Source of the DNA: Okamejei kenojei
Lineage: Eukaryota
Assembly: GCA_035221665.1 (NCBI GenBank)
Contig: CM069147.1
Location: forward strand, 25,482,001 to 25,546,000
Direction of reading: 5' to 3'
DNA: 64,000 nucleotides
A program made the translations under genes and the position numbers. Shown here one piece after another: positions 22,966 through 61,700 of this stretch. The stretch's first letter is position 1, and each line of letters begins with the position of its first letter. The notes below the pieces were generated by a model. It was not told where the DNA came from. It worked only from the letters and a program-made list of their open reading frames with translations, and made no database searches.

Positions 22966-25900
22966 GGGGGGGGTATTTAAAATTCCGAATTATTAATCAG
23001 AATTTACTTTCCGGGTCGGACTTCTAATCTTCGCACAAGTTTGCGGTCTCCATGTCTAACCACGATTAAAACACTGTTCCCACCATTCTGACACAGATTA
23101 CATCAACGAGGCTAGGCCGATACGACCGATGTTATTTGTTTGGATCTTTATGAATGATAATAAAAAAAATATCAACGAGACTAATATATTTCGAATGTAA
23201 ACCACACGGCTTTAGCAAGAATAGTCAATTTGAACATTTTATTTACGTAAATTAACCTTATAAAACCTGCCCAACAATAGGTAGATCAAAATGCTGAGTA
23301 ACTCAGCGGGATAGGCACATCTCTGGAGCGAATGATGGTGACGTTATTCGCGTCGAGATCCTTCTTCCGACCTTCTTCGACCCGAAACGTCACCTATTCC
23401 TTCGTTTCCAGAGATGCAGCGTGTCCCTCTGACTACTCAAGCATTTAGTGTCTCCTTTGATTTAAAACAACCGCATCTTGCCAGTTCTTTCCTCCACATA
23501 TGTTCAGCTATATATACGGCCTGTGCATAATACCTGTAATTCAGACATTTTAATTAGAACTATGGAAATGACGAGGACGAAACCGGTCTCACGAATCGAC
23601 TCAAATCTTCAAGATCGACCTCATTCGAATTAGAGAACATATTCTCGTCGTTTCAACAGAAATGCCATGGAGTCGCAGACTTCACAATTTGCTAGCCCGA
23701 CAGCGTTGACAATGGAGCACGATTTATTCAGTGGCACTATGGCATTGTCTTCGTATGTGGACTGCCAACAGAATATGTCCGACTTCCACACGTTTAGGGT
23801 GGCACAGACTATGCCCCCCCCTGTAACTAGTGCCATGACGCGGGCTCGATCTTGAAGAGGCGATGTCTGCAAGTTTTCTGACTGTAATCGTTGGTTTACC
23901 CCGGCTGCACCGTTTTCGTCCCAGATGGGGGGGTTTAAACATCCCAAAAGGCTTGCAGGTTAGTAGGTTAATTGACCTCTGTAAATTGTCCCTGGTGTGT
24001 AGAAGAGAAGCAATGTACAGGTCGTTGGTCGGCGCGCTCGGTGGCCTGAGGGGTCTGTTTCCACGCTGTATCTAAGATATTCTAAACTAAGAATCGGAGC
24101 GGTAAAATAAAATTACGAGAACGGGACGGAGCCTGTGCGTAATGCAATAAATCACATTGAAGCGGAGAGCAACATACTCTTCACATGGATAACAAGGAAG
24201 GGAGTAAGTAAATTAAACATTTTGTCCTGTGTGTATTATATTATTCATGTGAAAAATGTGACAAGTATTATAAATAATTGCTTAGTACACGGTAGAGGAA
24301 ACTGGAAACATCGACAATAAATAGCAAGGAGAAGCTATACGATATAAAACTAATCGGAGGTTTAACTACGAACCAAAGAGGCGGGTCTATTTTGTACTGA
24401 AATAAAAATTCCATGATTTTGATAGATCTGGGAAAACTGTAAAAATGTAAGACTGTAAAGACCAAGAGTTCACAAATAGAGGAAACAATTGTCATGTATT
24501 CTGTCAACGTCACTAGGTAAAAGTGTTCAAATCCACCACCGATTAAAGAGTTGCGGGACTTTGAAGAAAAACAACAAGTCACTCAAGAACTTCCGTGAGT
24601 TTTATATGTAAAACACACATATTTTGATACATTTTTCTAAGCATCATTTCACACTGTGAATAAAAGAGAACTCTGAGAACCTGATATGGATATCCTAAAG
24701 CACTTCAAAGTAATCCCTCCCAAAAGATATGTGATCAGATTGAACACGCGTACGTGTTTTTCGTTTAATTTATAAGGAAATGGTGCTCTGGTGGTTAATT
24801 ATCTAAAAAAGGCAATGGGAAGAATAGATGATTGCCAGGTTGACTAACAACGAATGGCGGAATGCCACAGCAAGGTACTCAGGCATAACTATATAATCCA
24901 TAGTTTTTAAGTCTATGATGGACAATAACAAACAGAGGTGATCATATTGAAATATAAAAATCCTCCGGTATATGTGGGCTGTCGGGTTTCTTGCGGGAAA
25001 CGTACTTTTCAGTTAGGGTTTCTAGAACAAATTTAAAGGAAACCAAAGGCGGAACACACAACTAAACAGAAAAGAGAAGTATAGGGTGGCGTTATGAATT
25101 ATACAAAGTAAAATCTGAGGGGGAAACGCGAGCTATTGAGGATCATTTAAGGGGGAAAAAGAAAGAAAACCTGCGTTTGAAACAATATTGGTTCAATTCA
25201 TGGCCTTATCAAAATTCAGGAGGGGAAGGGGCAATTTATCTTATTTGGCATCTAATAATATAAAGATCCTCCCACGAGGATGATAAAAACGGAAATGATC
25301 GAAAGGTGCGACAATAATGTCCCACAAATAAAAGAGCCTTCTATTCCCTGACTCATTTTACCGCCGATATTACAGTAGCCATATGTTACAAAAATAAATG
25401 AGATTTTTAAAATAAACCGCAATTTTATCCGCATCGATAAAACAAAAACACTGTTCAATTTGACACCTAATTCACTTTCATATCTTCAGCATTAAAAAGG
25501 TTATGGCCATTTTCATACTCGTAAATTTGCAATAGTACGCCAATTGTTTTACATTGACTTAACACAAAAGCTGTGATCGAGGACAGTCAAAAGCCCATAA
25601 CTTTCTTAAAGATTAAGAGAACTGAAATGGCATATTCAGTTTAAATATATAATGTGCAATCCTGACACGAAAATAAAACTCTTACATGTAATGACCCGAA
25701 ATGAAAGCATAAAATTAGATTAGTTTTACCTAATTATAGTTTAATAGCCAAAATCGAACCGTAGTGACAGAAAATAGTAATAAACACCCAGACTGCCTTG
25801 TAAAAATTAAACCAAAAAAAAATCTCGAAATCAGAACTTTAAAAAATAATAGTATAAAGGCTTGTAAGACGCTTAACAGATAGGTAACATAAATTACAAT

Positions 25901-26763
25901 TTCAATCCAAAGAGCAAGTCTATAGGAGGAGAACAGTATCTAGCCGGTATATTAGGCATATTATTCAAGTAGCATCATCATATTCCTCAATGTAAGCACA
26001 AAGCACCTCAGTAACATTTGTTATTTCCTCAACGTTTCAATTTTGGCATTGTAACACTATAATATTATATGCTCTTCAAACCACAACATGAAATGCCTTT
26101 CTGCCCATTGCTTCCCAATAAGTAAAGTCCAGTATAATCACAATTCCTTAAAATGATTTTATTTTGATATCCTAAGTAACCAAAAAACAAACAATTCCAT
26201 TTCACACAAAATTCACAATATAACATATTTTTAAACTCAATATCAAAAATTCAAATTGTCCAGATGGAAGGAATTTGATGTTACAATTCCCTAAAAGAAT
26301 CTAGAAACAGCCACTCAAAAAAAAGATTTATTTACACAATACATTTGACAAAAACTGAAATTTAGTATCAAAATATTGACTATTGGTAGCAATAACGGCA
26401 ACAAAGACGATTTAGATGCTCATTGAATGATTGTCCAAAAAAAAGAGCATTTAAACATCTTTGGAGAGGTATTTTTTCTTGAACGCGATCGTGATTGTAA
26501 CGTTGCATTTGCGGTGAAAATATTAACTCCCATATCGGCGGGAAAATACACTGCGGTTCGGCCCATATCACATTATCGCAACGTAAATATTAGATTAACG
26601 CCATCCCAAGAAGCAAGATAAGATGTAAAATATTCTAAATACCCTTTATATTGTCCTGTACTTGCGACCTCACGATGTAGGCGTTGAGGGGCAATATAAG
26701 ACGCTTTGTATAAAAACACGATATTAAATTGGTCTCGCGCATCAAAAAAAATCTGAACCGGAA

Positions 26764-27503
26764 NNNNNNNNNNNNNNNNNNNNNNNNNNNNNNNNNNNNN
26801 NNNNNNNNNNNNNNNNNNNNNNNNNNNNNNNNNNNNNNNNNNNNNNNNNNNNNNNNNNNNNNNNNNNNNNNNNNNNNNNNNNNNNNNNNNNNNNNNNNAC
26901 ATTGCAGCGAAAACTGGATTTTTATCGCCGCCCCCCCAAGCCCCCCCCCCCCCCCTCCCCCCCCCCCCCCCCCGCCCCCCCTCACCCCCCCACCCCCCCC
27001 AGCNNNNNNNNNNNNNNNNNNNNNNNNNNNNNNNNNNNNNNNNNNNNNNNNNNNNNNNNNNNNNNNNNNNNNNNNNNNNNNNNNNNNNNNNNNNNNNNNN
27101 NNNNNNNNNNNNNNNNNNNNNNNNNNNNNNNNNNNNNNNNNNNNNNNNNNNNNNNNNNNNNNNNNNNNNNNNNNNNNNNNNNNNNNNNNNNNNNNNNNNN
27201 NNNNNNNNNNNNNNNNNNNNNNNNNNNNNNNNNNNNNNNNNNNNNNNNNNNNNNNNNNNNNNNNNNNNNNNNNNNNNNNNNNNNNNNNNNNNNNNNNNNN
27301 NNNNNNNNNNNNNNNNNNNNNNNNNNNNNNNNNNNNNNNNNNNNNNNNNNNNNNNNNNNNNNNNNNNNNNNNNNNNNNNNNNNNNNNNNNNNNNNNNNNN
27401 NNNNNNNNNNNNNNNNNNNNNNNNNNNNNNNNNNNNNNNNNNNNNNNNNNNNNNNNNNNNNNNNNNNNNNNNNNNNNNNNNNNNNNNNNNNNNNNNNNNN
27501 NNN
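26764..27503. other. Assembly gaps (135 N at 26764-26898; 500 N at 27004-27503) flanked by poly-C
   Basis: N runs seen directly. Confidence 1.
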
Positions 27504-27576
27504 CCCCTCCATCCACCCCACCATACCCCCCCCCCCGCCCCCGCCCCCCGCACAACCCCCCCTAGATCCGCACATG

Positions 27577-33500: not shown

Positions 33501-36500
33501 CGGGGGCAATTTTTGTGCTGTGGAGTCGGAGTCGGAAAAAAAAAGTCCGACTCCGACTCCAAGTAAATGTCTGAGATAAGCTAAATCATCGAAAATCCAA
33601 CTTTTCTCTAAAAACATGGCCTCCATATAACTCCCCCCCCCCCGCACCCATTTTTCCATGGACATGGAAACATATTTGATGACAACCAGCACCCCCAGCA
33701 TGTACTACGGGAATCACTAAACATCGGGATAATCTATATAGCGCAGCAGTGCTGTGAGAATCAAGTGCGCAAGGGCGTGCGTTACAGTTGTTGCCTTACA
33801 ACGCCAGAATCGGGTTCGATCTGACTACGCGTGCTGTTATTAGAGGATTTTGTTTACGGTTCTCCCCGTGACCAGGTGAGTTTCCTCGAGATCTTCGGTT
33901 TCCTTACCCCCCTGCAAGAGTATGGTTTTTAGGGTTAATTGGTTTGGTTACAATGTAAATTGTTCCCTATGTGTGTATGGTAGTGTTAAGGTGTGGTGGT
34001 CGCTGGTCGGTGCGGGCTCGGTGGGCCGAAGGGCCCGTTTCTGTTATTTAAAATTCCGAATTATTAATCAGAATTTAACTTTCCTTGTCGGACTTCAATC
34101 TTCGCACAGGTTTGCGGGTTCCATGTTACTTTCGCGATTAAAAACCACTGTTCCACCTTTCTGACAAGGATTTAACTACCGTAGGCAAAAAGGCCGATAC
34201 GACCGATGTTATTTGTTTGGATCTTTATGAAGGATAATAAAAAAAATATCACGGAGACTAATATATTTCGAATGTAAACAACACGCGTTAGCATGAATAG
34301 TCAATTTGTACATTTTATTTACGTAAATTATATCTTAATAAACCTGTCCAACAATAGGTAGATGCAAAATGCTGGAGAAACTCAGCGGGATAGGCAGCAT
34401 CTCTGGAGCGAAGGAATGGGTGACGTTTCGCGTCGAGATCCTTCTTCCGACCTTCTTCGACCCGAAACGTCACCTATTCCTTCGTTCCAGAGATGCTGCG
34501 TGTCCCGCTGAGCTACTCTAGCATGTTGTGTCTACCTTTGATTTAAACCAGCATCTGCAGTTCTTTCCTCCACATTATGTTCAGCTATATATACGGCCTG
34601 TGCATAATACCTGTAATTCAGACATTTTAATTAGAACTATGGAAATGACGAGGACGAAACCGGTCTCACGAATCGACTCAAATCTTCAAGATCGACTCAT
34701 TCGAATTAGTGGCAACATATTTATCGTTGTTTCAACAGAAATGCCATGGAGTCGCAGACTTCACAATTTGCTAGCCCGACAGCGTTGACAATGGAGCACG
34801 ATTTATTCAGTGGCACTATGGCATTGTCTTCGTATGTGGACTGCCAACAGGATTATGTCGACTTCCAACACGTTTAGGGTGGCACAGACTACGCCTGACT
34901 GTGCCAGAGACGCGGGCTCGATCTTGAAGACGGGCGATGTCTGCATGTTCTGACTGTAATCGTTGGGTTTTCCCCGGCTGCTCCGTTTTCGTCCCACATC
35001 CCAAAAGGCTTGCAGGTTTGTAGGTTAATTGACCTCTGTAAATTGTCCCTGGTGTGTAGAAGAGAAGCAATGTACAGGTCGTTGGTCGGCGCGCTCGGTG
35101 GCCTGAGAGGTCTGTTTCCACGCTGTATCTAAGATAATCTAAACTAAGATCGGAGCGGTAAAATAAAATTACGAGAACGGGACGGAGCCTGTGCGTAATG
35201 CAATAAATCACATTGAAGCGGAGAGCAACATACTCTTCACATGGATAACAAGGAAGGGAGTAAGTAAATTAAACATTTTGTCCTGTGTGTATTATATTAT
35301 TCATGTGGAAAAATGTGTCAAGAATTATAAATAATTGCTTAGTATCACGGTAGTGGAAACTGGGAACATCGAAACAACCCCTCCCCAATAGTAAGGAGAA
35401 GCTATGTCGAAGTAGATCGTTTATCGAGGTTTAATACGAACCAATTCTATTTGTACTGAAATAAAATTCCATGGATTTTGAATAGATCTGGAAAAACTGT
35501 AAATGTATTGACTGTAAAGACAAGAGTGGCACAACTAGGAGGAAATATTGGTGTTCTTTGTCAACGTTATTGGGAATGTTCAAATCCACTACCGATTAAA
35601 GAGTTGCGGGACTTTGATGAAACTACAAGTCTATCAAGACTCCGTGAGTTTATGTAAAACACACATATTTTGATACATTTTCTAGCATCATTTCACAATG
35701 TGAATAAAAGGGAACTCTGAGAACCTGTATATGGATATCCTAAAGCACTTCATAGTATTCCCTCCAAAAGATATGTGATCAAGATAGGAACACGCGAACG
35801 TGTTTTCGATATAATTTATAAAGAAATGGTGCTCTAGTGGTTAATTATCTGAAAAGGGCAATGGGAAGAAATAGATGATTGCCAGGTTGACTAACAACGA
35901 ATGGCGGAATGCCACAGCAAGGTACTCAGGCATAACTATTTAATCCATAGTTATGTCGTGATGGACTATATAAAAACAAGAGGTGATCATATTGAAATAT
36001 ATAAATCCTCCGGGTTGTGGGCGGTCGGGTTTATTGCGGGAACGTACTTTTCAGTTAGGGTTTCTAGAACGAAATTTAAGGAAACCAAAGGGTGGAACAC
36101 ACACTAAACAGAAAAGAGAAGGATTGGGGTGGGCGTTATTGAATGTATACAAGGCAAAATCTGAGGGGGAAACGAGAGCTTTGAGGATCATTTAAGGGAA
36201 AAAGAACAGAAAACCGGCGTTTGAAACCAAGATTGGTTCATTCATGGCCTTATCAAATTCTGGAGGGGGAAGGGGCAATTTTCTTATTTGGCATCTTATT
36301 TATTTAGATCCTCCCACGAGGATGAAAATCGGGAAATGATCGAAGTGCGGACTGTTTGATGTCCTCAAATAAAAGAGCCTTCTATTTCCTGACTCATTTT
36401 CCGCCTATATTAACAGTAGCAATGTTACAAAATTATGAGATTTTTAAAATCAAGTCCGCAATTTATCCCATCAGATAAAACATAACAATAAGTTTAATTT

Positions 36501-37890
36501 GACACCTAATTCACTTTTATATCTTCAGCATTAAAAAGGTTATGGCCATTTTCATACTCGGAAATTTGCAAATTGTTCCCTATTGTTTTTCCATTGACTT
36601 AACACAAAAGCTGTGATCGAGGACAGTCAAAAGCCCATAACTTTCTTAAAGATTAAGAGAACTGAATGGCATTTTCAGTTATGATATATTGATGCATTCT
36701 GAAACGAATATAAAACATCTTACTTGGATGACCCGAAATGAAAGCATATAATTAGTTAGTTACCTAATTATAGTTAATTTGCAAAATCGACCGTTGTGAC
36801 AAAAATAGTAATAAACACCCAGACTGCCTTGAAAATTAAACAAATTGATATTCTCAAGATCAGAACTTTAAAATTATTGTATTATATGCTGTAAGTCCGT
36901 AACAGATAGGTAAATAAATTACAATTTCTATCCATAGAGCAAGTCTTTAAGGAGGAGATCAGTTGCTAGCATACATTGGCATATTACAATCAGTAGCATC
37001 ATCATATTCCTCAGATTGTAAGCAATAAGCAACTCTGTACATCTTGTTTTTCCTCAACTTTTCAATTTTGGCATTGTAAACTATAAGTTTTTGCTCTTCA
37101 AACCACACATGAAATGCCTTTCTGCCCATTGCTTTCCCATTAAGAATGTCCTGTAGATTCAATTTCTTAAAATGATTTTTTTTGATAGCCTAAGTAACCA
37201 AATAACAAACGAATTCCATTCACACAAGAATTCACAATATAACATGATTTTAAAATCTCAATATCATTAATTCAAATGTCAGATGGAAGGAATTTGATGT
37301 TTAATTCCCATAAATGTATCTAGAAACAGCCACTCAATATATATTTTTTTACACAATACATGGGACTAAAACTGATATTTAGTATAAAATTATTGGCTAT
37401 GGGTAGACAATAACAGGACAAATAGACGATTTAGATGCTCTTATGACATGATTGTCCAAAAAAAAGAGCATTTAAATCATCTTGGAGTGGGATTTTCTGG
37501 AACGCGATCGATTGGAACGTTGCATTTGCGGTGAATTTTAACCCCATATCGGCGGGAAATACACTGCCGGTTCGGCCCATATCACATTTTCGCAACGTAA
37601 AATTAGATTAAAGCCATCCCAAGAAGCAAGATTATATGTAAAATATACGACATACCCTTTATTTTGTCCCGTTCTTGCGATCCGTCACGTTGTAGGCGTT
37701 GAGGGCATTAGAAGTCGCTTTGTATTTTAATCAAGTTATTAAATTGTCTCGCGCTTAAAAAAAATCGGGAACGGAAGTCGGATCGATTATTCTTCAGCCC
37801 GAGGAAATCCGCCTCCGACAGGCAGGAGAAAACTGGATTTTAATCCCGCCCCCCACCCCCCCCCCCCCCCCCCCCCCCCCCCTCCCCTCA
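27577..37890 (+). repeat. Copy B of the ~10.2 kb direct duplication
   Basis: Collinear with 16780-27000. Differences are mainly 1-bp indels plus G/T-rich garbled stretches at ~29200-29580 and ~32100-32300. Confidence 0.95.
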
Positions 37891-37929
37891 AATGCACCAA
37901 TGTCGCGCACACGTTATGTAACGTCGCTA
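36417..37929. mobile_element. Putative non-autonomous TIR DNA transposon (other reading ~25376-27000)
   Basis: Imperfect terminal inverted repeats TAGCAATGTTACAAAA / TTATGTAACGTCGCTA (13/16). Flanks ttaacag / ttaaaag resemble a target-site duplication. Confidence 0.5.
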
Positions 37930-38057
37930 TTAAAAGAAACACATTTCTCGGCCATGTCATGGGGTGACCGATGTGCTTAGGAATCAGTGTAGAAGATACC
38001 GTGACGATTATTAACCAGAACTTCATCTTTCCCAGCCAGGCCTGCTTCGTCGTCGAT

Positions 38058-38112
38058 ATGTTTCTGAAAGTGTCACCTTGGACGACGTATTTCCTTGGAA
38101 TTTTGAATGCGG
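38058..38112 (+). CDS. Gene A exon 1, leader MFLKVSPWTTYFLGILNA
   Basis: ATG, moderately hydrophobic core and phase-1 donor G|gtacac (weak consensus), 293 bp before the V exon. Confidence 0.6.
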
Positions 38113-41100
38113 GTACACTACGGCTTCTATTGCTTTTTACTTATGGGTCTTCAAAATACCCAGATATTATAGTTGTACCTTATAATGTCATGCTGAATTG
38201 TCCATAAGGTCATGGCTGTTGTATGGGTTCTGGAAAGGAGTGTAATTTACGAAAACTTTACGAGGACACAAATAGCGGGCATAATAATGCGGTTCAATTC
38301 ATTGTAAATATTTGGTCTGAGTGCAATAAGATTTTTGCCAGCAGTGTTTAATTTCCATTGCTGTGCATCAATGACTAAACTGGATTGTGCACCATCTATT
38401 GACAGCTGCTGTGAACAGGTCGGGCAAGACGATATCGAATGTTGTTCAGAAGCCGGTGATCAGTGGCATAAACTTTACCTGTCGGTGTCCCTTCCCCTTC
38501 AATGTAAATGTTTCACACCTAACGGTTTTCTGGTGGAAAGATGGAATTAAAGGCTTCCTGAAAGAAGATAGCAGGAAAATCATCATGATAAGGGCAGGAG
38601 GCGCCTACCTTCACCTGCTGAATGTCACGGTCTCGGACGCCGGAACATACAATTGTCTTGCAAAAGAAGCGGGCCGAACGGTCGCGGAGGGAACAAGAGA
38701 GCAACTTGTCGTATATGGTGAGCGAACGGTTCTTTAGTTGCAGCTCGAATTTGAATTTTCCTTCACAAAAATCTTTAATCCAGAATACAAATGTGCAAAA
38801 CGTTGAAAAATTATTCTAGATTGATTCGTTTGCAAACATAGGTCAGAGGGCATAACAGCAATGATATTTGAGTAGATATATATTGAAGGTAGTGAGTGTA
38901 AGATGAATACATACAACGGTTTCAATTTGACACTGAACGCCGAGGCAGGGATCCTCCTGATGTTTTCCTAATGATAATGTTATCAACACATAATCCTGTG
39001 AATTGAAAGAGCGAGGTTTTTACTTCAACAAAATAATTGAAATACAAATTATATTTCTTGCGCCGAATTAGAGAAACAAGAAATTTTAGTCAAAGCATTC
39101 TCTGTAAGCCAGTCAATGCCTGCAACTGTTTATGACTGATTATATTGGGAAATTTTCATATTCACAAATGTACTGTGCCTTTGAAGAGTTGAAACTTGAA
39201 AGTTGATTCGCGCATGTGAGCACAAGAAACAAGTGTGCAAATTGGGGGAGCCGATTACGATGAATTACACCTTCATCTGGGCTCCCAAATTAAAAATTAT
39301 GATGGAATTAAGTAGCGTTGGAACAAATGTTATTGGTTGATATAATCGACGTTTCCCCTTTCTTTTAATTCTATTCCTCTTTACTTAGCCGTCCCTTCTC
39401 CTCTGAAGATTGTATCTGTTCGATCTAGAAATGCTGCGACTCATTTCCTGAAAATCCAGTGCAGAACGGCTGCCTTTTACCCGAAAGAATTTAATCTCAC
39501 CTGGCACAGAAATGGTTCCTTCATCCAATCTGGATTTCGGCATGAACAACATTTAACGGCAGACGGATTGTATGAAGTTATCAGCTCTTTACATGAGAAA
39601 CGGGCAGTCAAAGAAGGAACCGTTTACACATGTAAAATGATTCACCGTTCTATGCTAACTCCAGCAACTGCCAACTACACGGTTCCTCATGAAGGTAACG
39701 TGTCCCACGCATAGTATAATGGATAGCCCACTGAATAATAATATTAATGGTAAAAATAAAATGTGAGGATATTTAAAATACCGTATTTTCTGCAGCAAAT
39801 TAATTTTCCTGGAAGTTGTGCAATTTTCATATTTTTTGCCAGCGTAGACAGACGCTGTACAGTCCATCCAGTCTATGTTGCCTCCCAAAAGATTCCATCA
39901 ATACCGTTCCTGCAATCGATCGCGCACCTGTAGCCCATTCCCTTTCACGTGATCTACAAGTCCACTCTGATGCCCCCACAAACATCACACATTCCCGAGG
40001 GATAATGTAAAAATAATCAATTAACTCACCAAGCAGTTCCTTGGTAAAATCTAAGAGACTGTGCAATGTGCATGCAGACAGTTCCCGAAGCCAGACCTGA
40101 GCTCGGATACCTGGAGCTATGAATCGATAGCACTATTGCTGCACCATTAACTCGGTGAAGGTTTTGTTTTTGTTCGTTTATGGCTGAAATGTGTAATCAA
40201 TTGCAACTCAGACACCGAGACTACCTAAAAATAATCTGCGCAAATACCGAAATATGAAGTACTCCTCCTCCAATTTGTCTGTGGCCTCACGCTGGTAACG
40301 CAGGATGGCCAGAACAGAAAGGTCAGTGTGCGAATGGGAAAGTGATTCTGAATAGTTAGCAACCGGGAAATCCAATAGGCCTTGGCGGACCTCGTGCATG
40401 TTTTCAGCTAAACGGCCGCAGAATCTACCTTTATCTCGTTATTGTACGGTATCCCGCGTCAGGAACACTGGATGCTGTAGATAAGGTGATGGGAGGTGGG
40501 TGAGGGAGGGTGGAAGGATGGGGGGGAGGGAGGGAAGGGGGGGGGGGGGGTTGGTGTCACGTTCACTAAAGAATGAGAGCAGGGTGGAAGTTAGTGGAGT
40601 ACTTAATGAGGCCATAAGTTCTGCACGAGTGCAGGAAGTAGCTCCAGCGTAGTTGTCGATGTATTCGAGAAGGAGTTCGGGGATAACGCCAGCGCATGTT
40701 TTGAACAAACACTGCACCATGTAACCAACAAAATGGTAGCCAGTAGCTGTGGCTGATGTGAGCGTCCATGCTGCAACTTTAACTTGGAGAAAGTGAGAGG
40801 AGTCAAAAGAGACGTTGTTGAGGGTGACGACAAATTCCTCTAGACATAGGAGATTGTTCGTAGAGAAAAATATCTTTGGTCTCTTTTCAAGGAAGAAACT
40901 GAGGTCATGAGATTGTCCTGCTCCTAACCACTCTACACCTACTACAGACGTCAGAGGTCATGGGGAGAAGGCGGGAGAATGGGACATGGAGTGATAGATC
41001 AGCCATGATTTAATGGCGGAGTAGACATGAAGGGCCGAATTGCCTAATTCTCCTATCCTTATGACGTAAATACCCCTCCTCCGCCCGCCCATGCACAGCT

Positions 41101-44100
41101 TCTTCCAACCCCTCCTCTCTGAAGCCCTCTGGCCCCCACGCCCGAGCCTGCTTCTGCACCTCTGCTCGCCCCTGACCTCAGCCGTCACCCCTGTCATGTT
41201 TTCAACACCCCCTGGCCTCCTTTGCGATACCACCGGCCAGTCCTCGACAATTAGTGCTACATCCTACACCCGTGTAGAACTCAACTTCACCACTAATTTC
41301 CACCCTGCCCTCAAATTCATATGAATCTCTGATACCACTCTATCCTTCCTTTCTGTCTCTCCATTCGCTCCACCAGCCACCGCAATCCTAAACATCATCT
41401 TCGGACATTTCCGACGCCTCCAACCTGATCCCATTATTAACCACATATTTACATCTCCATGCCTTGCCGACTTTTGCCGACTGTTCCTCCACAACTATGG
41501 TTCATTCATCCCTTTAAACCCAGACCACCCCATCCCGAGGTACTTTCTCTACTACTGCAGGAGATGTAACACCTGTCTCTGTACCTTCTTCCTCGCCACT
41601 ATGCACGGACTCCGACAGTCTTTCCAGGTTGGACAGTAGTTCACATGCACCTTCTCTAATCTTATCTACTGCATCCGATGGTTTGGATGCGGGGTGCTGT
41701 ACAATAGTGTGAAAAGCTGTGGATTTTGCGGCCATTTAGCTGAGCATGCTCAGATCTACTGGATCTCCCATTAGCTAAGTATTTTAATTCCTTTTTTATT
41801 CCTACACTGACCTTTCTGTCCGAGGACCTGCCTTGCACAGAGTGGCGAAAGCAAATTCGACCAGCAACACGTCATATTTCACTTGTATGGCATACAAGCC
41901 AGCGGCATGAACGTTGAATTCTCTAATTTTAGTAATGTCCACAAACACTCACCTCCCTCTCCTCTCCCTCGCCCCCGCCCCCTTCCATTTGCCCCCTTTC
42001 ATTTTCTAAATGTCGATTAACCAGTCCCACAATTCGCAACGATGTACCCCCCTTGGGATAACGTCGTTCCTAACCAACAGTTCCTATCAGGGAACCTCCC
42101 TGCGTGGGGTCAAATCGTGCTAATCCCGATTTCTCCTGTTTCTTGCTTCAGCCCCCCCCCCCCCCCCCCCCCCCCACCCACACCATCAGTCTGAAGAAGT
42201 GTCCCGACACAAAACGTCACCTCTCCATTTTCTCCAATGATGCTGCCTGACCCGCTGAGCTACGCCAGCATTTTCAGTCTATCCATGAGAACTAACTTGT
42301 TGGTTCTTGCATTAATTGGGGACAGTTAGTGGGGAGAAGACGTCAGTAATGATTCACTGCTGGCCAGCGTCAGTAACATTAACATCTCCTTCAAGATTTG
42401 GTGAACAGGAGATATCCAAATTAATGTATTATGTTCCACAATTTTCTGTTTCCTAACGGTCAATATTCCACAAAGTTCACTTAAGATCTATTTATTTCAC
42501 TCCTAATCGCGCCATAAATCGAAATTGTTGGCTCTTTGCCGCCTTCCACGCGGTTCTGGTGAAATCCATTGAGTGAACATTTGAAATATCTTGCTTTGTT
42601 TTCCTGCAAAGTCTACTTTGAAATAACTCAATTAAATATAAACATTTGGTCATCGGTTTAACCTCCCACAGCTGTCGAGGGTTTATCTGCTTCTCTAATC
42701 GCTGGAAGTATCGGAGGTGCAGTGTTAATTTTAATGTTCATCGTTATCGTCGTGATGACAATTATATTTAGAGGTATGTTTCTCATCCATTTTTTTAACA
42801 TTGTCTTCCCAGTATAACATTATAATATAATAGTATTTGGTAATCGTCACAATAAAGGAAATGAAACATTTGCACGGGCAAAAATTATGATTATAATAAA
42901 CAGCACCGACTTAACGAAGATATTCAATTTTGCCTGCGACTAATGTTTGATGATCACATATTTTGAATTCTATGTTTTATTTCGAAACATCATTACATAG
43001 CAGCCAGCATTTAATTGTACCTATTGGTCAAGATCTGCACATCTGTGAACATCTGTGAATTTTGCGTCCATCGATCATCCGTTCACACTAGCTCTACGTT
43101 AACCTACTTTCGCATCCACTCAATACAGTGGGGGCAATTTGCAGAGGTCAATTAACCACACATCCGCACATTCTTGGAATGTGGGTGTATACTGGAGCAA
43201 CGGGTGAAACGGACGTGGTCACAGGGAGAACGTGCCTCAAACTCCGCATTTTCCTGCTGCACCACTGTGTCGTCCAACATTTTGGAAAAAGCGTGGCAGA
43301 AACAACGAGGTTTAAGCCTTCGTGCATATGTAGTGAAGCCGTATATAGTGAAATTCGATCGTGGAATTATCACATGATATTACGTTCTTGGCGTGCTAAC
43401 AGGTCACCACGTCGCACGGACATTTATCACTATTTTGTTTTTCCGAGCAGGTGCAAAGAAGCGTACAGTAAATACAAATCGGACACAAAGTTGGGTAAGG
43501 CTTATTTAATAAATGACTATTCAATTTGTGAAAGTTGAGACAGGATTGTGCCTTTGTTGAAACCAAGCTGTTTTAATAAAGACCACGTCTTATTCTGTTT
43601 GAACATTCCCAGTCAGTAAAGTTCACAGTACATTACAAAGGAGGACATAAAGAACAATACAAAATGCATTTACAGGAGTTCTCATTTATGATATATATCA
43701 TAAGTATTGTTTACACCAGGTGTAGTGAAAGGAATATTTTCATTGCACCTTACAGCTTTTGTCCAGCCTCAGGCGAGATTCCGGAGTACTGGAGAGTGGC
43801 CATGTTGTTTCTTTGTTTAAGAAGGGAAGTGAATGGAATCCAAGGCTCAGCCAGTTGGATATAAATATAGGTCGGTTAACCACACGTTAGTGGTTGGGAA
43901 CCGATTGGAAAGACTTCTTCAAGAGAGGATCTACAGACATTTGGAAGAGAATGGACGAATTGGCGATAGCCAGCACGGCCTAACATGTTTTACTGATGTA
44001 ATTGAGTTTTCTGAACAGATGACAAAGGAGATTGATGAAGGCTGGGCAGTAGCTGCTGCAAACACGAATCTAAGGAAGGCTTGTGATAAAGTCCCTCGTG

Positions 44101-45726
44101 ATAGGTTGATCCAAAAGATCAAGATATGCAGGATCCACTGTAACGTGGTGATATTAATTCAGAACTGGCTTCTTCAGAGCGACAGAGGTTGGTCGAAGGA
44201 AGATCTACCCGAAGGTCTGTGATCAGTGGAATTCCACAATGACCTCTGTTATTTGTGATATATATAAATTACGTAGACATAAATCTAGATGGGTTGTTCA
44301 GTAAATTTGATGAACAGCAGAACAGGAGGAGTTGCAGACAGCGAGAAGGGTTGTCAGAAGATACAGACGGTTATAGATAATCGACAAAAGTGGGTGGACA
44401 AATGGCAGATGGAGCATGATGGAGTATAACCCGAGCAGTCTGAGCTGTTGCACTTTAGGGTGGCGCATGTAAGGATAATGTCAATATGCTAAAGTGAATT
44501 GATGTGCAGGGAGGTCATGGAATCCAAGTTCATAGCTCACTGAAGACGGCAGCATGAAGAGATAGGCTGGTGAAGATGGCGTATGATATGTTTGCCTTCA
44601 TTGCTGCGGCATTGAATATAAAAGTCAATAAATCATGATACAGCTCTCTAAGACTATGGTTAAGCCCCATTTGGAGTTTTCCGTGCGGTTCTGGTAGCCT
44701 CATTACAGAAAGCCTTTGGGGAGGGTGCAGAAGAGGTTTACCAGAAGCGCTTGGATTAGAGAGGGTGAACGAAGGGGTTGTATAAACTTGGATAGTTTTT
44801 TGCTGGAAATTCGGGGCATGAGGGCAGAATTGATAGAATGAAAGGCATAGATAGGGTAGACCGTCAGAACCTTTTCCACAAAATCGAAATGTCCAATGCT
44901 AGAGGGTATAGCTATAAGGTGTGTGGGAGAATATTTGACGGATGTATACGGGGTAAGTTCTTTACATAGCTATTGTTGTTTGCCTGGAAGGCATTACCGG
45001 GAGTGGTGGTGGAGGCAGACACAATAGTTGCGTTTAAGAGGCATTTAGATGGACATATGCACAATGGAAAAAGGGATATGGATCATGTACAGATAGATCA
45101 GTTTAACGTGGCATCGTATTCAGCACAAACATTTTGGGCCGAAGGGCGTGTTCCTATGCTGTACTGTTCTATGTTCCATATTATGTGCAGTTATCATTTT
45201 GATCTGTCCAATTGCCCCACAGTCGATTAGACTCTGGAAATTGGTCTTCGTGCGAGAAGTCATTCGACACAAAACGAAAAATATTCGTCCCTCGTTTATT
45301 CTTGCAAGTGCATTTCACGCAAAAGCTTCATTTGTGGTATAATTAATTTTAAAATGTTCATGAATTTCCAGGAAGAAGGTGAGAACGTTAGTGGCAATCT
45401 GATGTACGCCCATTTGGATCTTGTTCGCAGCAAAGAATATGGGAAACCTGAAGAGCACGTGGAGAGGCCTGTGTATGCAAAGGTAAAGTACGTTTCACGC
45501 ATTCACTCTACACATTTGAGAATACAGATACGTCTTACTCGGAAAAATTAGACGTTTTCTTGTCCAATTAACAATAGCAAACATTTGTGCACAGATCGCA
45601 ATTATGGCTGCTGCTGAGAACGAACTGGCATACGCTCCCTTGAACACGTCAAGCTCGAAAAATATTTTGAAACGGCAAAATAAAGAAATAAGTGTAATAT
45701 ATAGCGCGGTGAAAAATAACAACTAA
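38058..45726 (+). CDS. Gene A, spliced: SIRP-alpha-like inhibitory IgSF receptor (leader-V-C1-TM-4 Tyr motifs), 353 aa. join(38058..38112,38406..38717,39389..39694,42672..42773,43451..43494,45372..45482,45595..45726)
   Basis: All introns are GT-AG with compatible phases (1,1,1,1,0,0). The joined CDS is 1062 nt with no internal stop and shows recognisable V, C1, TM and ITIM modules. Confidence 0.85.
38406..38717 (+). CDS. Gene A exon 2, Ig V-set domain with in-exon J-like G strand
   Basis: ttgacag| acceptor, G|gtgagc donor. FTCRC, VFWWKDG, LHLLNVTVSDAGTYNC, AEGTREQLVVY. Confidence 0.92.
39389..39694 (+). CDS. Gene A exon 3, Ig C1-set domain (absent from the ORF track)
   Basis: ctttacttag| acceptor, G|gtaacg donor, 306 nt. 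VPSPLKIVSV...IQCRTAAFYPKEFNLTWHRNG...DGLYEVISSL...VYTCKMIHRSM. Confidence 0.92.
40300..40900 (-). mobile_element. Penelope-like retroelement fragment
   Basis: Minus-strand translation PELLLEYIDNYAGATSCTRAEL resembles the PLE RT YIDD region. Related to 58255-58340. Confidence 0.65.
41230..42285 (+). mobile_element. Penelope-like retroelement fragment (RT C-terminus, GIY-YIG remnant, terminal repeat)
   Basis: NFHPALKF, FTCTFSNLIYCIR and a terminal ctgaagaag...aaacgtcac segment. Confidence 0.65.
42672..42773 (+). CDS. Gene A exon 4, transmembrane: AVEGLSASLIAGSIGGAVLILMFIVIVVMTIIFR
   Basis: cctcccacag| acceptor, G|gtatgt donor, phase 1-1, long uncharged hydrophobic stretch. Confidence 0.9.
43451..43494 (+). 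CDS. Gene A exon 5, juxtamembrane: GAKKRTVNTNRTQSW
   Basis: tttttccgagcag| acceptor, TGG|gtaagg donor, phase 1-0, basic stop-transfer residues. Confidence 0.75.
43755..45175 (+). mobile_element. Old degenerate CR1 LINE in gene A intron 5
   Basis: YRSVNHTLVVG, DSQHGL, RKACDKVPRDRL and WQME remnants, plus a CR1 3' tail (gttctatgtt). Confidence 0.8.
45372..45482 (+). CDS. Gene A exon 6, cytoplasmic, LMYAHL and PVYAK|I
   Basis: aatttccag| acceptor, AAG|gtaaag donor, 111 nt, phase 0-0. Confidence 0.88.
45595..45726 (+). CDS. Gene A exon 7, cytoplasmic, LAYAPL and VIYSAV, stop TAA
   Basis: ttgtgcacag|ATC. IAIMAAAENELAYAPLNTSSSKNILKRQNKEISVIYSAVKNNN*; aligns with the gene B terminal exon. Confidence 0.85.
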   Translation: MAIMAAAENELAYAPLNTSSSKNILKRQNKEISVIYSAVKNNN

Positions 45727-47320
45727 ATTCGTCAGGCTATATGGCAGCGAATCGAAAATATGTCTGTTAATCTGGAAATGATTTGTTCGCCAATTTGATT
45801 CTAATCATAGTCCTCGAATCGTGGTATCATTGTGTCATACAACATGGACCAAACTTGGGCCAAACTTCATGCCGTCCAATATGCCCCAATAATCACACCT
45901 ACCCGCGTTTGACCCATATCCCTCTAAACATGTCCTAACTATGTACCTATCCAAATATCCAATACATGCTGTTATAGTATCTGACTCAACTTGTTGCAGA
46001 CACCCGCTATGTTAAAGCAGTGCCCGTCAGTTTTTTAAAATTAAATCTCTCTCCTCTCACCTTCAACATATATCCTCTTTTCATTCCCGTGCTGTGGGTA
46101 AAATACTCTGTGGATTCGTCCTATCTATTCCCAAAATGTATTTCTTTACTTTCATTGCCGCGGACATACCTTTTAATGTATCGTGAAGTTATAATAGGCA
46201 CGTTTCCTTCTTGATTGAGGGGGCTCACACAGCATGGCTAACTTAGTATTGGTCTGAGACCATCTCATTGTTATTACAATTCCACTATTCCCCATTAATT
46301 ATGTTTACGTTCGAATGCGCGAGTTGGCTTTCCGAATTCCAGTTATTGCTTTATTAAGTTTGGTGCATGTGGTTATCAATTGATTATTTTCTTTCATACC
46401 AAATAATTATTTCAAGATTCCAATTAGTGAATGTTAGTGAATTCGATATTTTATACATCCCTAAGCCCTCAATCGCTTGTAGTTTTCACATTTTAATCAT
46501 TTTTATTTCACTGGATTACTCTCGTCAACCTGCCAGCACATGCGAATTTCGAGCCGTGATATTAGAGATATCCTTATCACCTCTTCGTTTAATCCACTAA
46601 TAAGCTAAGGAATTTTAGGCATCAGGTGTCCTTAGTTCCCCATTGCAGGACTCTTAGATATCAAAATGGAATATGGTGAAATATTCTGGGACTCAATTCT
46701 CTTTGCAACCATTAGGTTTTTTTATTTTTTGCAGGGGTGGACTTATATGCATGTGGTCGTGAACATCGTCTCTGAGTGTACATTATTAATATCTTGTAGT
46801 GGAACCAAACTGGCCTGTATTCTCCATTAGAAAGATACTCAAGATTTGGAATCATCAAAAACGCTCAGCAAACTAGGCAGCATGTGTGGAAAGTGAAATA
46901 GCTTTAATGTTTCACGTCGGAGATTGTTCCATTGGAACTGGAAAAGAGAAATTGAAAGATATATTTCCAAGTTGCTGGACGGTGGCAATCCACCCCTCTT
47001 GCAACCTTTTCCGACACCGACATTTACCTTGTTATCTTTATTTCCCAGTTGCGGCAGAACTTCGTGGTTGAAACATGGACCGCTTCTCTTTCCAGGCATG
47101 TTAGCAAACGAAATGAATGTATATTATTTTTGAATTCACATCTTTAACATTTGTATATTTGATTTTGAATTTAAGAAAATCTGCATATCATATACTATTT
47201 TAAATGATAATCATGTTGTTCCTTACAACAGTGGAATGAATGTTTGGAATATTTGGTTTTCTATTTGAATCAAACATTCTGTAATGTACATCGTGACTTC
47301 TAAGCAAATCATGTTTTCAG

Positions 47321-53810: not shown

Positions 53811-56363
53811 AAACAGGAAATTAGAAATTAGAAATGCGTGCGACAAAGGCAAAACAGTTATAATGGGTGACTTCAATCTACATATAGATTGGGTTAATCA
53901 AATTGGCAGGGGTGCTGAGGAAGAGGATTTTTAGGAATGTATGCGGGATAGTTATCTAAATCAACATGTAGAGGAACCAACGAGAGAGCAGGCTATTTTA
54001 GACTGGGTTTTGAGTAATGAGGAAGGGGTAATTAGCCGTCTTGTTGTACGTGCCCCCTTGGGCAAGAGTGACCATAATATGGTTGAGTTCTTCATTAGGA
54101 TGGAGAGTGACATTGTTAATTCAGAAACAATGGTTCTGAACTTAAAGAAAGGTAACTTTGAGGGTATGAGACGTGAATTGGCCAAGATTGACTGGCAATT
54201 AATTCTAAAAGGGTTGACGGTGGATATACAATGGAAGACATTTAAAGACTGCATGGATGAACTACAAAAATTGTTCATCCCAGTTTGGCAAAAGAATAAA
54301 TCGGGGAAGGTAGTGTATCCGTGGATAACAAGGGAAATCAGGGATAGTATCAAAGCAAAGGATGATGCGTACAAAGTAGCCAGAAAAAGCAGCATACCAG
54401 AGGACTGGGAGAAATTCAGAGACCAGCAGAGGAGGACAAAGGGCTTAATTAGGAAAGGAAAAAATAGATTATGAAAGAAAACTGGCAGGGAACATAAAAA
54501 CTGACTGCAAAAGTTTTTATAGATATGTGAAGAGAAAGAGGTTAGTTAAAACAAATGTAGGTCCCTTGCAGTCAGAAACAGGTGAGTTGATCATGGGGAA
54601 CAAGGATATGGCGGACCAATTGAATAACTACTTTGGTTCCGTCTTCACTAAGGAAGACATAAATAATCTGCCTGAAATAGCAGGGGACTGTGGGTCAAAG
54701 GAGGAATTGAGTGAAATCCAGGTCAGTCGGGAAGTGGTGTTGGGTAAATTGAATAGATTAAAGGCCGATAAATCCCCAGGGCCAGATAGGCTGCATCCCA
54801 GAGTACTTAAGGAAGTAGCTCAGGAAATAGTGGATGCATTAGTGATAATCTTTCAAAACTCTTTAGATTCTGGAGTAGTTCCTGAGGATTGGCGGGTAGC
54901 AAATGTAACCCCTCTTTTTAAGAAGGGAGGGAGAGAGAAAACGGGGAATTACAGACCAGTTAGTCTAACATCGGTAGTGGGGAAACTGCTAGAGTCAGTT
55001 ATTAAAGATGGGATAGCAGCACATTTGGAAAGTGGTGAAATCATTGGACAAAGTCAGCATGGATTTACAAAAGGTAAATCATGTCTGACGAATCTTGTGG
55101 AATTTTTCGAGGATGTAACTAGTAGCGTGGATAAGGGAGAACCAGTGGATGTGGTATATCTGGACTTCCAGAAGGCTTTCGACAAGGTCCCACATAAGAG
55201 ATTAGTATACAAACTTAAAGCATACGGTATTAGGGGTTCAGTATTGATGTGGATAGAGAACTGGCTGGTAAACAGGAAGCAAAGAGTAGGAGTAAACGGG
55301 TCCTTTTCACAATGGCAGGCAGTAACTAGTGGGGTACCGCAGGGCTCAGTGCTGGGACCCCAGCTATTTACAATATATATTAATGATCTGGATGAGGGAA
55401 TTGAAGGCAATATCTCCAGGTTTGCGGATGACACTAAGCTGGGGGGCAGTGTTCGCTGTGAGGAGGATGCTAGGAGACTGCAAGGTGACTTGGATAGGCT
55501 GGGTGAGTGGGCAAATGTTTGGCAGATGCAGTATAATGTGGATAAATGTGAGGTTATCCACTTTGGTGGCAAAAACAGGAAAGCAGACTATTATTTAAAT
55601 GGTGGCCGATTAGGAAAAGGGGAGATGCAGCGAGACCTGGGTGTCATGGTACACCAGTCATTGAAAGTAGGCATGCAGGTGCAGCAGGCAGTGAAAAAAA
55701 GCGAATGGTATGTTAGCTTTCATAGCACAAGGATTTGAGTACAGGAGCAGGGAGGTTCTACTTCAGTTGTACAGGGTCTTGGTGAGACCACACCTGGAGT
55801 ATTGCGTACAGTTTTGGTCTCCAAATCTGAGGAAGGACATTATTGCCATAGAGGGAGTGCAGAGAAGGTTCACCAGACTGATTCCTGGGATGTCAGGACT
55901 GTCTTATGAAGAAAGACTGGATAGACTCGGTTTATACTCTCTGGAATTTAGGAGATTGAGAGGGGATCTTATAGAAACTTACAAAATTCTTAAGGGGTTG
56001 GACAGGCTAGATGCAGGAAGATTGTTCCCGATGTTGGGGAAGTCCAGGACAAGGGGTCACAGCTTAAGGATAAGGGGGAAATCCTTTAAGACCGAGATGA
56101 GAAAGACTTTTTTCACACAGAGAGTGGTGAGTCTCTGGAACTCTCTGCCACAGAGGGTAGTTGAGGCCAGTTCATTGGCTATATTTAAGAGTGAGTTGGA
56201 TGTGGCCCTTGTGGCTAAGGGGATCAGAGGGTATGGAGAGAAGGCAGGTACGGGATACTGAGTTGGATGATCAGCCATGATCATATTGAATGGCGGTGCT
56301 GGCTCGAAGGGCTGAATGGCCTATTCTTGCACCTAATTTCTATGTTTCTATGTTTCTATGTTT
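53811..56363 (+). mobile_element. Young CR1 LINE, 5'-truncated within the endonuclease domain
   Basis: GDFN, SDHN, KSPGPD, NYRPVSLTS, LDFQKAFDKVPH, GVPQGSVLGP, FADD and a (CTATGTTT)n tail. Confidence 0.97.
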
Positions 56364-58769: not shown

Positions 58770-61700
58770 TGTAGGATTCGATTGGCACCATAAATAAACG
58801 AATTGATAATGTGAGAGATGAATTATCGGAGAGAATTGATAAGGGGGCAGAAGACACCACGAAGAAGTTTGATGCTGTGCTGGAAACTGTCTCTACATAT
58901 GTGACAACAATGCGAGACATGGAGGAAGAGATGGCCTGAATGGCTGAAGAGATGAACAATATGAGGTCAGAATAAGACCTCACTACAAGACAGATGGTGA
59001 CTCAGCTGGCAAAAGTTTTGCGTAAATGCCTGGAATGGCAGCTCGTTCGAGACGTCAAAATCTAAGATTAGTTGGAGTACCAGAGGGAGCCGAGAGAGAT
59101 ATCCCTCGGGAGTTCGCTGCGGGCTTAATTAAAGAAGCTCTTAAGCTCCCTAACCTACCGAAAATTGAAGTGGCACACTGAGTTCTGAGATTTAAACAAA
59201 AATCTCAAACAGGTTCAGAATATACACGATAGATTATTGTGAAATTTTGGGACATTTCTGACGTGGAAGAGGTTATGAGTAACATTAAATATGGAGTGCC
59301 ACTGAAGTATGGTGAAACAACTTTCAAAATATTCAGGGACTATCCCTATGAAATTGTGCAAAAGCGAAATCAGTTCTCTAAGGCAAAGCAGGCTCTCCAA
59401 GGAATTAAAGAGGTCAGATATGCTGTCTACTACCCAGCTAAAATGAGCATTTCTTACAAGGAACAGCAAAAATCGTTCACAAATCCGGAGAATGCATACA
59501 AATATGCTCCAACCATCGTGGAAGAGAAGAAGTAGCTGGAAGGGTTGGATGGTATGGATATTCTTTCTTTTTACTATTTCACCATGAATGGTAGTGTGCT
59601 GCCAGAAGAAGGAACTCTCCCTGTGCTTTGTCTAGACTTCTTATTGGTGGAATGCTAACTCAAGGACATACTCTGTTCCAAGTGATGCGGAAAAAGATAA
59701 ACACCAAAACAACAACAGAATGCGGACAGAGCAATTATTGTTGTTTAAGAGATTAAATGAATAACCTAAATGGTATAGAACTAACATTTTTAACAATAAT
59801 AACATAGAATATTAACATAGAAATAGTAATGAATGTTAATTAGAAAGGTAGAAAGGGTGATTTACAAACTAACATTTATAACTTAATAAGTTTCAAGTAG
59901 ATTTATAATTGGGGCGTGAGGGGTAGAGGAGGGATCCTGGTTCAGAACCATGAGCCTGTATCAGGTTAACCCCTTCAACCAACAGTTGATTATTTCCGAG
60001 GTAAAATTTTACGCTCAATATTTAGTAGATAAAACTGTTAGTTATATTTGGGAATATATATGAAATGGATATGTACAGTGGCTTGCAAAAGTTTTCATAC
60101 CCTTTGAACTTTTCCACATTTTGTCACGTTACAACCACAAACGTAAATGTATTTTATTGGGATTTTATGTGTTAGACCAACACAAAGTGGTGCATAATTG
60201 TGAAGTGGAAGGAAAATGATACATGGTTTCCAAATTTTATTACAAATAAAAAACTGAAAAGTGTGGCGTACAAAAGTATTCAGCCCCCCTGAGTCAATAC
60301 TTTGTAGAACCACCTTTCGCTGCAATTACAGCTGCAAGTCTTTTGGGGTATGTCTCTCCTAGCTTTGCACATCTAGAGACTGAAATTTTTGCCCATTCGT
60401 CTTTGCAAAATAGCTCAAGCTCAGTCTGATTGGATAGAGAGCGTCTGTGAACAGCAATTTTCAAGTCTTGCCAGAGATTCTCAATTGGATTTAGGTCTGG
60501 ACTTTGACTGGGCCATTCTAACACATGAATATGCTTTGATCTAAACCATTCCATTGTAGCTCTGGCTGAATGTTTAGGGTCGTTGTCCTGCTGGAAGGTG
60601 AACCTCCACCCCAGTCTCAAGTCCTTTGCAGACTCTAACAGGTTTTCTTCCAAGATTGCCCTGTATTTGGCTCCATCCATCTTCCTATCAACTCTGACCA
60701 GCTTCCTTGACCCTGCAGAAGAAAAGCATCCCCACAGCATGATGCTGCCACCACCATGTTTCACAGTGGGGATGGTGTGTTCAGGGTGATGTGCAGTGTT
60801 AGTTTTCTGCCACACATAGCGTTTTGCATTTAGGCCAGAAACTTCAATTTGGTCTCATCAGACCAGAGAACCTTCCTACACATGTTTGCTGTGTCCCCCA
60901 CATGGCTTTTGGCAAACTGCAAACGGGACTTCTTATGGCTTTGTTTCAACAATGGTTTTCTTCTTGCCACTCTTCCATAAAGGCCCGATTTGTGGAGTGC
61001 ACGACTAATAGTTGTCCTGTGGACAGATTCTCCCACCTGAGCTGTGGATCTCTGCAGCTCCTCCAGAGTTACCATGGGCCTCTTGGCTGCTTCTCTGATT
61101 AATGCTCTCCTTGCCCGGTCTGTCAGTTTAGGTTGACGGCCATGACATGGTAGGTTTGCAGTTGTGCCATGCTCTTTCCATTTTCAGATGATGGATTGAA
61201 CAGTGATCCGTGAGATGTTCAAAGCTTGGGATATTTTTTTATAACCTAACCCTGCTTTAAACTTCTCCACAACTTTATCCCTGACCTGTCTGGTGTGTTC
61301 CTTGGGCTTCGTGATGCTGTTTGTTCACTAATGTTCTCTAACAAACCTCTGAGGCCTTCACAGAACAGCTGTATTTATACTGAAATTAGATTAGACACAA
61401 GTGGACTCTATTTACTAATTAGGTGCTTTCTGAAGGCAATTGGTTGCACTGGATTTTATTTAGGGGTATCAGAGTAAAGGGGGCTGAATACTTTTGCACC
61501 CCACACTTTTCATTTTTTTATTTGTAAAAGAATTTGAAAACCATGTATCATTTTCCTTCCACTTCACAATTATGTGTCACTTTGTGTTTGTCTATCACAT
61601 AAAATCCCAATAAAATACATTTACGTTTGTGGTTGAAATGTGACAAAATGTGGAAAAGTTCAAGGGGTATGAAAACTTTTGCAAGCCACTGTATATTGTA

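Follow-up and report, generated by a model that had tools for sequence, protein, structure and literature searches.

SIRP-alpha of tetrapods, also known as SHPS-1 or PTPNS1, is a type I receptor of the immunoglobulin superfamily (IgSF). It combines a V-type domain with a J-like G strand, a membrane-proximal part of the C1 set, an uncharged transmembrane segment and a cytoplasmic tail whose four tyrosines are arranged as two pairs of the ITIM (immunoreceptor tyrosine-based inhibitory motif) type. Inhibitory signalling through Src kinases and SHP is established for SIRP-alpha and other ITIM receptors, and the SIRP family also includes activating members with a charged transmembrane segment. Recent reviews treat the origins of the SIRPs as unknown or date the family to tetrapods, and a survey of the IgSF from 2026 dates it to Tetrapoda (PMC13262535). 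Elasmobranchs possess UrIg and UrIg2, non-rearranging genes with a split leader, a VJ domain encoded in a single exon and C1-type domains, which are expressed in liver and gill and whose products are found in the extracellular matrix (PMC12227049). Here we describe a gene in a stretch of 64,000 nucleotides from the skate Okamejei kenojei (NCBI GenBank assembly GCA_035221665.1, contig CM069147.1, positions 25,482,001 to 25,546,000 of the forward strand), which is referred to as the window and whose own coordinates are used throughout. The gene has in common with SIRP-alpha the C1-set domain, the uncharged transmembrane segment and the four-tyrosine tail, its N-terminal domain is a shortened V domain with an eroded J-like strand, and it is like UrIg and UrIg2 in its split leader and its unrearranged organisation. 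Judging from its sequence, we put at about three in four the probability that it is an intact, non-rearranging type I IgSF receptor gene of the ITIM-bearing inhibitory type, belonging to a chondrichthyan multigene family whose nearest relatives among bony vertebrates are the SIRPs.

The gene spans 38058-45726 on the plus strand. Reading of 37800-46000, with each exon translated, gives seven exons separated by introns that all begin with GT and end with AG. The incoming exon phases are 1,1,1,1,0,0, a pattern usual in Ig-superfamily genes, and the exons sum to 1062 nt, i.e. 353 codons and a TAA stop, in agreement with the in-phase protein of 353 residues put forward in the original prediction. 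There is no frameshift or internal stop across the seven exons, and the four split codons encode A, A, A and G. The exons were translated singly and the total length was obtained by arithmetic; likewise, the queries used in the searches were single exons or database proteins. Exon 1 (38058-38112) carries the start codon and a split leader of 18 codons and one base, leaves in phase 1 at a GT donor and, over 18 residues, shares 72% identity with the N-terminal end of a relative from the sawfish Pristis (P0165). Exon 2 (38406-38717) encodes the N-terminal Ig domain, a shortened V domain with an eroded J-like G strand, and exon 3 (39389-39694) encodes a C1-set Ig domain; the two are 63% and 66% identical to P0165, respectively. 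The V-like domain and its G strand thus share one exon with ordinary splice sites, in place of the division into V and J segments by recombination signal sequences seen in Ig and T-cell receptor (TCR) genes, and the gene is non-rearranging, as had been claimed for it. A stalk and the uncharged transmembrane segment are encoded by exon 4 (42672-42773), a basic juxtamembrane segment of 14 residues by exon 5 (43451-43494; phase 1 in, 0 out), and two tyrosine modules by exon 6 (45372-45482) and exon 7 (45595-45726), the latter ending with the C-terminus KNNN and the TAA stop.

The splicing model is supported mainly by its colinearity with a predicted protein of 357 residues from the horn shark Heterodontus (P0013, XP_067905931.1). 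In BLAST alignments exons 1-4, 6 and 7 follow one another along this protein, with exon 4 aligned to residues 235-259, the boundary between exons 6 and 7 at residues 315/316 and exon 7 aligned to the last 42 residues, where the C-terminus VYAAVKNSN has the same C-terminal motif as the skate gene. Exon 5 has no colinear match to P0013, its sole match having an E value of 5.9 and lying in the V region, and by eye only it resembles the stretch G-G-K-R-T-S-L-N-T-S-Q after the transmembrane segment of the shark protein. Exons 6 and 7 score 21.4 and 21.8 bits, respectively, with a profile of family tails, and exon 6 shares 52% identity with the repeats in the tail of P0158. Homopolymer tracts occur in and around the gene at 37848-37885, ~40520-40550 and ~42150-42180, with a poly-C run about 170 bp upstream of the start codon and poly-G and poly-C runs in intron 3.

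Exon 3 is the most clearly assigned of the two Ig domains, as it matches the Pfam C1-set profile with 37.9 bits against a cut-off of 21 and has among its PDB matches IgG CH3, the Ig kappa constant domain, SIRP-gamma and the alpha-3 domain of MHC class I. It is the only C1 exon between the V and transmembrane exons, whereas mammalian SIRP-alpha has the order V-C1-C1. The transmembrane exon encodes a hydrophobic run free of charged residues followed by R-G-A-K-K-R; an alternative exon with a charged transmembrane segment, of the type found in batoid relatives, was sought in the window and gave matches at chance level only. The tail contains the motifs LMYAHL, PVYAKI (split after the lysine over the junction of exons 6 and 7), LAYAPL and VIYSAV, with their tyrosines 23, 15 and 23 residues apart. 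LMYAHL, LAYAPL and VIYSAV fit the ITIM consensus (S/I/V/L)xYxx(I/V/L), while PVYAKI has a proline at position -2 and does not; a fifth tail tyrosine, in KEYGKP, matches no motif. When exon 6 is aligned with exon 7, the two stay in register with 30% identity, and the tail is therefore a duplicated two-tyrosine module. The C1 domain, the uncharged transmembrane segment, and the four motifs with their distances had all been named in the original prediction and were recovered when counted again.

By its sequence, the encoded protein begins with a signal peptide, which is followed by two Ig domains, an uncharged transmembrane segment with adjoining basic residues, and three canonical ITIMs with one ITIM-like motif, arranged in two pairs. 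An uncharged transmembrane segment together with at least one ITIM is what defines an inhibitory IgSF receptor of the ITIM-bearing type, and the predicted protein has both. By analogy with the signalling of SIRP-alpha and other ITIM receptors, engagement of a ligand by the N-terminal domain would lead to phosphorylation of the tail tyrosines by Src-family kinases. Each pair of phosphotyrosines, spaced 23 residues apart, would next serve as a docking site for SHP-1 or SHP-2, bound through their tandem SH2 domains, and this would dampen cell activation as it does for SIRP-alpha.

The gene is one more member of a family that is already predicted, and named SIRP-alpha-like in RefSeq, in 13 or more species of cartilaginous fish. 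When the C1 exon was run with HMMER against 1.84 billion representative sequences, it yielded 416 proteins at E<=1e-3, dozens of which are 200-420 residues long with a single C1 domain at about residues 123-220 and an identity of 35-57%. They come from chimaera, sharks and batoids, namely Callorhinchus, Heterodontus, Heptranchias, Stegostoma, Chiloscyllium, Scyliorhinus, Rhincodon, Pristis, Hemitrygon, Mobula, Hypanus, Amblyraja and Cetorhinus. Their RefSeq names include 'tyrosine-protein phosphatase non-receptor type substrate 1-like', which denotes a SIRP-alpha-like protein, 'signal-regulatory protein beta-1-like', 'natural cytotoxicity triggering receptor 3 ligand 1-like' (NCR3LG1-like) and 'uncharacterized', and some relatives are misnamed 'class II histocompatibility antigen beta chain-like'. 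The best matches to the exons of the skate gene are batoid, with Pristis P0165 followed by Hemitrygon and Mobula, as would suit a ray or skate genome, and the Ig domains of family relatives are 50-66% identical to its own; there was no close protein match in the collection searched, the best being 66% over one domain. The original prediction spoke of a poorly characterised cartilaginous-fish family. This stands in that the relatives are chondrichthyan and no dedicated paper was found in the searchable literature, which mostly omits subscription journals, but the proteins had already been predicted and given SIRP-alpha-like names.

The relatives have a common layout of leader, V domain, C1 domain and transmembrane segment, in the same order as in the skate gene, followed by one of two endings; some relatives, for instance P0012 of a skate, have two C1 domains. 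The first ending is a long tail with repeated LTYAAL...TVYAE modules, and the shark relatives P0013, P0158 and P0160 combine ITIM tails with an uncharged transmembrane segment, as does the skate gene. The second is a short tail, preceded by a transmembrane segment with either an arginine (in the WIVRG of the sawfish, stingray and devil ray proteins) or a terminal D-H. This D-H pair, for example in IIFDHV, closes the transmembrane segment of P0162, P0172, P0006, P0164, P0027 and P0174, which have a very short tail and represent a third tail type. As far as the sequences can tell, the family looks like a paired system of activating and inhibitory receptors, in which short-tailed members of other species with an arginine in the transmembrane segment are probably the activating partners, as is the case for SIRP-beta. 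The search with the C1 exon also returned strong matches to longer proteins with 5-10 C1-type domains, i.e. P0001 of the great white shark ('titin-like', 1105 residues), P0009 of manta (1428 residues), P0003 of stingray (1014 residues) and P0005 of the sevengill shark (980 residues), all with automatic names of the kind 'titin-like' or 'uncharacterized'. The accession of P0001 stands next to the one that PMC12227049 cites for UrIg2 of the great white shark, and these four proteins are therefore probably the products of UrIg2-type genes.

Outside the cartilaginous fishes, the SIRPs are the relatives to which the evidence points. With the horn shark protein P0013 as the query, rodent SIRP-alpha was the only match from another group. 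Among 20 sampled multi-domain matches of the C1 exon, ten have SIRP-type names (SIRP-alpha, SIRP-alpha-like, SIRP-beta-like or SIRP-gamma-like) or cluster with a protein so named, and these come from coelacanth, lungfish, sea turtle and bearded dragon; the other ten are unnamed or are 'titin-like' or 'hemicentin-like' multi-Ig proteins, some of them UrIg2-like. A tree of C1 domains was built from 118 rows with a quick IQ-TREE search, after removal of near-duplicates (>62% identity), of proteins with exactly two scored C1 domains and of domains below 25 bits, and with two domains each from the first 16 multi-domain proteins. In this tree the chondrichthyan family forms one clade with a Shimodaira-Hasegawa-like approximate likelihood-ratio (SH-aLRT) support of 100, and the skate gene lies in a subclade of six rows (96) with members from rays and sharks. 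The family and all SIRP C1 domains fall on one side of a split, the UrIg2-like multi-C1 proteins on the other.

The tail agrees with this placement. Shark tails align with the SIRP-alpha tail by BLAST in register and colinearly, and a profile made from 13 family tails only gives the rodent SIRP-alpha tail 26.3 bits, whereas shuffled sequences reach a mean of 1.2 (sd 1.7, maximum 10.7). The tyrosines are spaced 23/15/23 in the skate gene and 24/17/24 in SIRP-alpha, so the similarity of spacing noted in the original prediction stands. A profile of the whole family, run against PDB, is less decisive, with UrIg2 at 103 bits over three C1 domains, SIRP-alpha at 90, SIRP-gamma at 78, Ig light chains at ~71-78, CD276 at 71.7 and B7-H6 at 69.5. 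The skate gene thus has two marks of the SIRPs, the membrane-proximal domain of the C1 set and the four-tyrosine tail built as two ITIM-type pairs, and on these comparisons we describe it as a SIRP-like gene from a chondrichthyan family related to the SIRPs. We do not call it a SIRP-alpha ortholog because B7-H6, MHC, TCR, Ig light chain and tapasin are absent from the tree.

Several results weigh against this reading, beginning with the N-terminal domain. Exon 2 gives only sub-threshold Pfam matches (Ig_3, I-set, ig and V-set), with V-set at 21.3 bits against a cut-off of 26, and its J motif AEGTREQLVV is degenerate compared with the family consensus GxGTGxxLxV. Its best PDB matches by sequence are titin and contactin, and its canonical cysteines are 56 residues apart, compared with 66 in domain 1 of rodent SIRP-alpha. 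The V ancestry of the exon is nevertheless settled by its relatives, as seven of the eight tested match the Pfam V-set above threshold over the whole profile and the family shares the GxGTGxxLxV motif. The invariant residues of the family are kept in both Ig domains, including all of those in exon 2 (C27, W42, D77, G79 and Y81). An AlphaFold2 model of exon 2 made with the family alignment reached a predicted local distance difference test (pLDDT) score of 89 and shows strands A', B, C, D, E, F and G but no C'', while folding without the alignment gave a pLDDT of 37.5 and was unusable. Foldseek placed I-set domains (titin, myomesin, IgLON) at the top of the matches to this model, with the V domain of PD-L1, TREM-1 and BTLA close behind; NKp30 was not among the listed matches. 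BTLA and NKp30 are immune receptors with an I-type Ig domain, to which the predicted fold is similar, but both are single-domain receptors without C1. Exon 2 is thus a V domain by descent that has been shortened towards the I type, with a fold predicted to be I-set-like. The description of the ectodomain as antigen-receptor-style, with one V domain and a J-like strand, therefore holds by ancestry more than by form.

The remaining points on that side concern the relatives, the tree, the tail and expression. The proteins nearest to the ectodomain of the gene, P0165-P0167 of sawfish, stingray and devil ray, have an arginine in the transmembrane segment, short tails and no ITIM tail, and orthology is therefore not one-to-one. 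The support for the split that places the family with the SIRPs is modest (88, from a quick search), and it was obtained in a tree without the reference families named above. Since the tail profile was compared with shuffled sequences and with no other ITIM tails, the likeness to SIRP-alpha could in part be convergence on the spacing required by tandem SH2 domains. Reads of three small sequencing runs with the same species label, mapped over 39490-45489, fell solely on stretches of introns 3 and 5 that derive from transposons; the depth was zero on the examined part of exon 3 and on exons 4, 5 and 6, so that these reads speak neither for nor against expression. In this mapping 42142-42190 was flagged as a skipped repeat.

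Alternative explanations may be compared on the same evidence. The colinearity of the four-tyrosine tail with that of SIRP-alpha, the position of SIRPs as closest relatives outside the cartilaginous fishes and the 'PTPNS1-like' names that RefSeq gives to many relatives would all suit a strict ortholog of SIRP-alpha, the CD47-binding 'don't-eat-me' receptor of phagocytes. We nevertheless regard this as unlikely, as the family forms a clade of its own, whose stem is long (1.1 substitutions per site), with many paralogs per species, is not nested within the tetrapod SIRPs in the C1 tree, and differs from SIRP-alpha in having one C1 domain instead of two and a V domain about 10 residues shorter between the cysteines; moreover, the window contains no marker genes for a comparison of loci. 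The chicken SIRP, reportedly a single-copy gene in birds, is said to have a V and C1 ectodomain and an ITIM tail, and if this is right, a SIRP may have just one C1 domain. The V and C1 ectodomain is also shared with B7-H6 (NCR3LG1), and a protein of this B7-family type would be a ligand for NKp30-like receptors rather than a receptor. Several relatives carry the corresponding automatic name, the family profile matches B7-H6 chains and CD276 in PDB at the scores given above, relatives give weak Pfam matches to C2-set_2 (CD80-like) and C2-set_3 (butyrophilin), and PD-L1 V domains are among the fold matches of exon 2. All the same, SIRP-alpha scores higher with the profile, though with one more C1 domain, and the tail matches that of SIRP-alpha. 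The family also retains the GxGTG J-like motif, which is known from SIRP, NKp30 and antigen receptors; to our knowledge, B7 V domains lack this motif, and B7-H6 has neither a J-like motif nor paired ITIM modules. In addition, variants with an arginine-bearing transmembrane segment and a short tail mark paired receptors rather than ligands, and none of the 20 sampled non-family matches of the C1 exon is named as a B7 member. A place in the B7 family is accordingly very unlikely.

The other two alternatives concern the state of the gene and its deeper ancestry. An unexpressed or decaying copy in a birth-and-death cluster, whose frame is intact only through recent duplication, would be consistent with the lack of RNA evidence, with the eroded J motif, with the introns full of transposon debris and with the presence in the same window of an incomplete paralog made up of a C1 exon and two tail exons. 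Against this, neither the frame nor any canonical splice site has been lost in the seven exons, and the invariant Ig residues and the three canonical ITIMs are all retained. An identity of no more than 50-66% to relatives means that the copy has kept its frame open despite its age, and we judge an unexpressed or decaying copy to be quite unlikely. The remaining proposal is that the gene is a relic of the lineage of non-rearranging antigen-receptor precursors, of the UrIg or UrIg2 type, and not a relative of the SIRPs. The VJ-like and C1 layout is in its favour, and among the PDB matches of the family profile other than muscle proteins the UrIg2 crystal chain 9dmx_A ranks first; its score of 103 bits, however, sums three C1 domains, and the UrIg2-like multi-C1 proteins lie across the main split of the C1 tree, with their C1 domains in a different clade. 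UrIg and UrIg2 have three to eleven C domains, and the paper that describes both never mentions an ITIM (PMC12227049). Membership of this group was rejected on the number of domains (one C1 here), the ITIM tail and the C1 tree, and descent from that lineage is hardly credible. We therefore retain, as the most probable reading, an intact gene for an inhibitory receptor of a SIRP-related chondrichthyan family.

The family as a whole may be of wider interest. Proteins that join a SIRP-alpha-type tail to a C1 domain and a J-bearing V domain occur across chondrichthyans, which suggests a lineage as old as the jawed vertebrates. Since the family appears to have both inhibitory forms and forms with a charged transmembrane segment, it would be a candidate system of paired receptors in the most ancient living group that has adaptive immunity. 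More tentatively, and at less than even odds, the family may be the cartilaginous-fish branch of the SIRP lineage itself, in a minimal VJ-C1 form, with paired members of the ITIM and arginine-transmembrane types in tandem clusters. If this were true, the SIRPs and the four-tyrosine tail that docks SHP would have originated at the base of the jawed vertebrates and not in tetrapods, and the family would be a living model of the non-rearranging VJ-C1 receptors that are discussed as kin of the antigen-receptor precursor. The skate gene itself adds one member and an exon-level description rather than a new kind of system, because the proteins have already been predicted and given SIRP-like names in RefSeq.

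Apart from the skate gene and the incomplete paralog, the window looks to be mostly transposon debris. The paralog lies on the minus strand, with a C1 exon at 5645-5926 (Pfam C1-set 40.8 bits; 34% identity to exon 3) and two tail exons at 2525-2611 and 2305-2427, which contain the motifs PTYTDL, TLYAQV, LTFTTL and IEYAGI and are split at the second tyrosine motif, after the glutamine of TLYAQV, in the same way as exons 6 and 7. Its C1 domain belongs to a different subfamily of the C1 tree, together with P0125 and P0099. Leader, V and transmembrane exons for this paralog were sought across the window and were not found; it may be a fragment or a pseudogene, unless its 5' exons have been lost or are hidden in a sequence gap. 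The gap in question is formed by runs of N, 636 bases in total, at ~26700-27560, flanked by G- and C-rich low-complexity sequence. There are two series of open reading frames (ORFs) resembling a reverse transcriptase of the long interspersed nuclear element (LINE) kind, at 7795-10061 and 53941-56261 on the plus strand, and a Tc1/mariner-like transposase ORF at 60294-60815 on the minus strand. Finally, chance tblastn matches revealed identical peptides about 11.06 kb apart, at ~23140-24210 and ~34220-35270 (23181/34258, 24013/35070 and 24211/35267), which suggests two copies of a repeated element or a segmental duplication.

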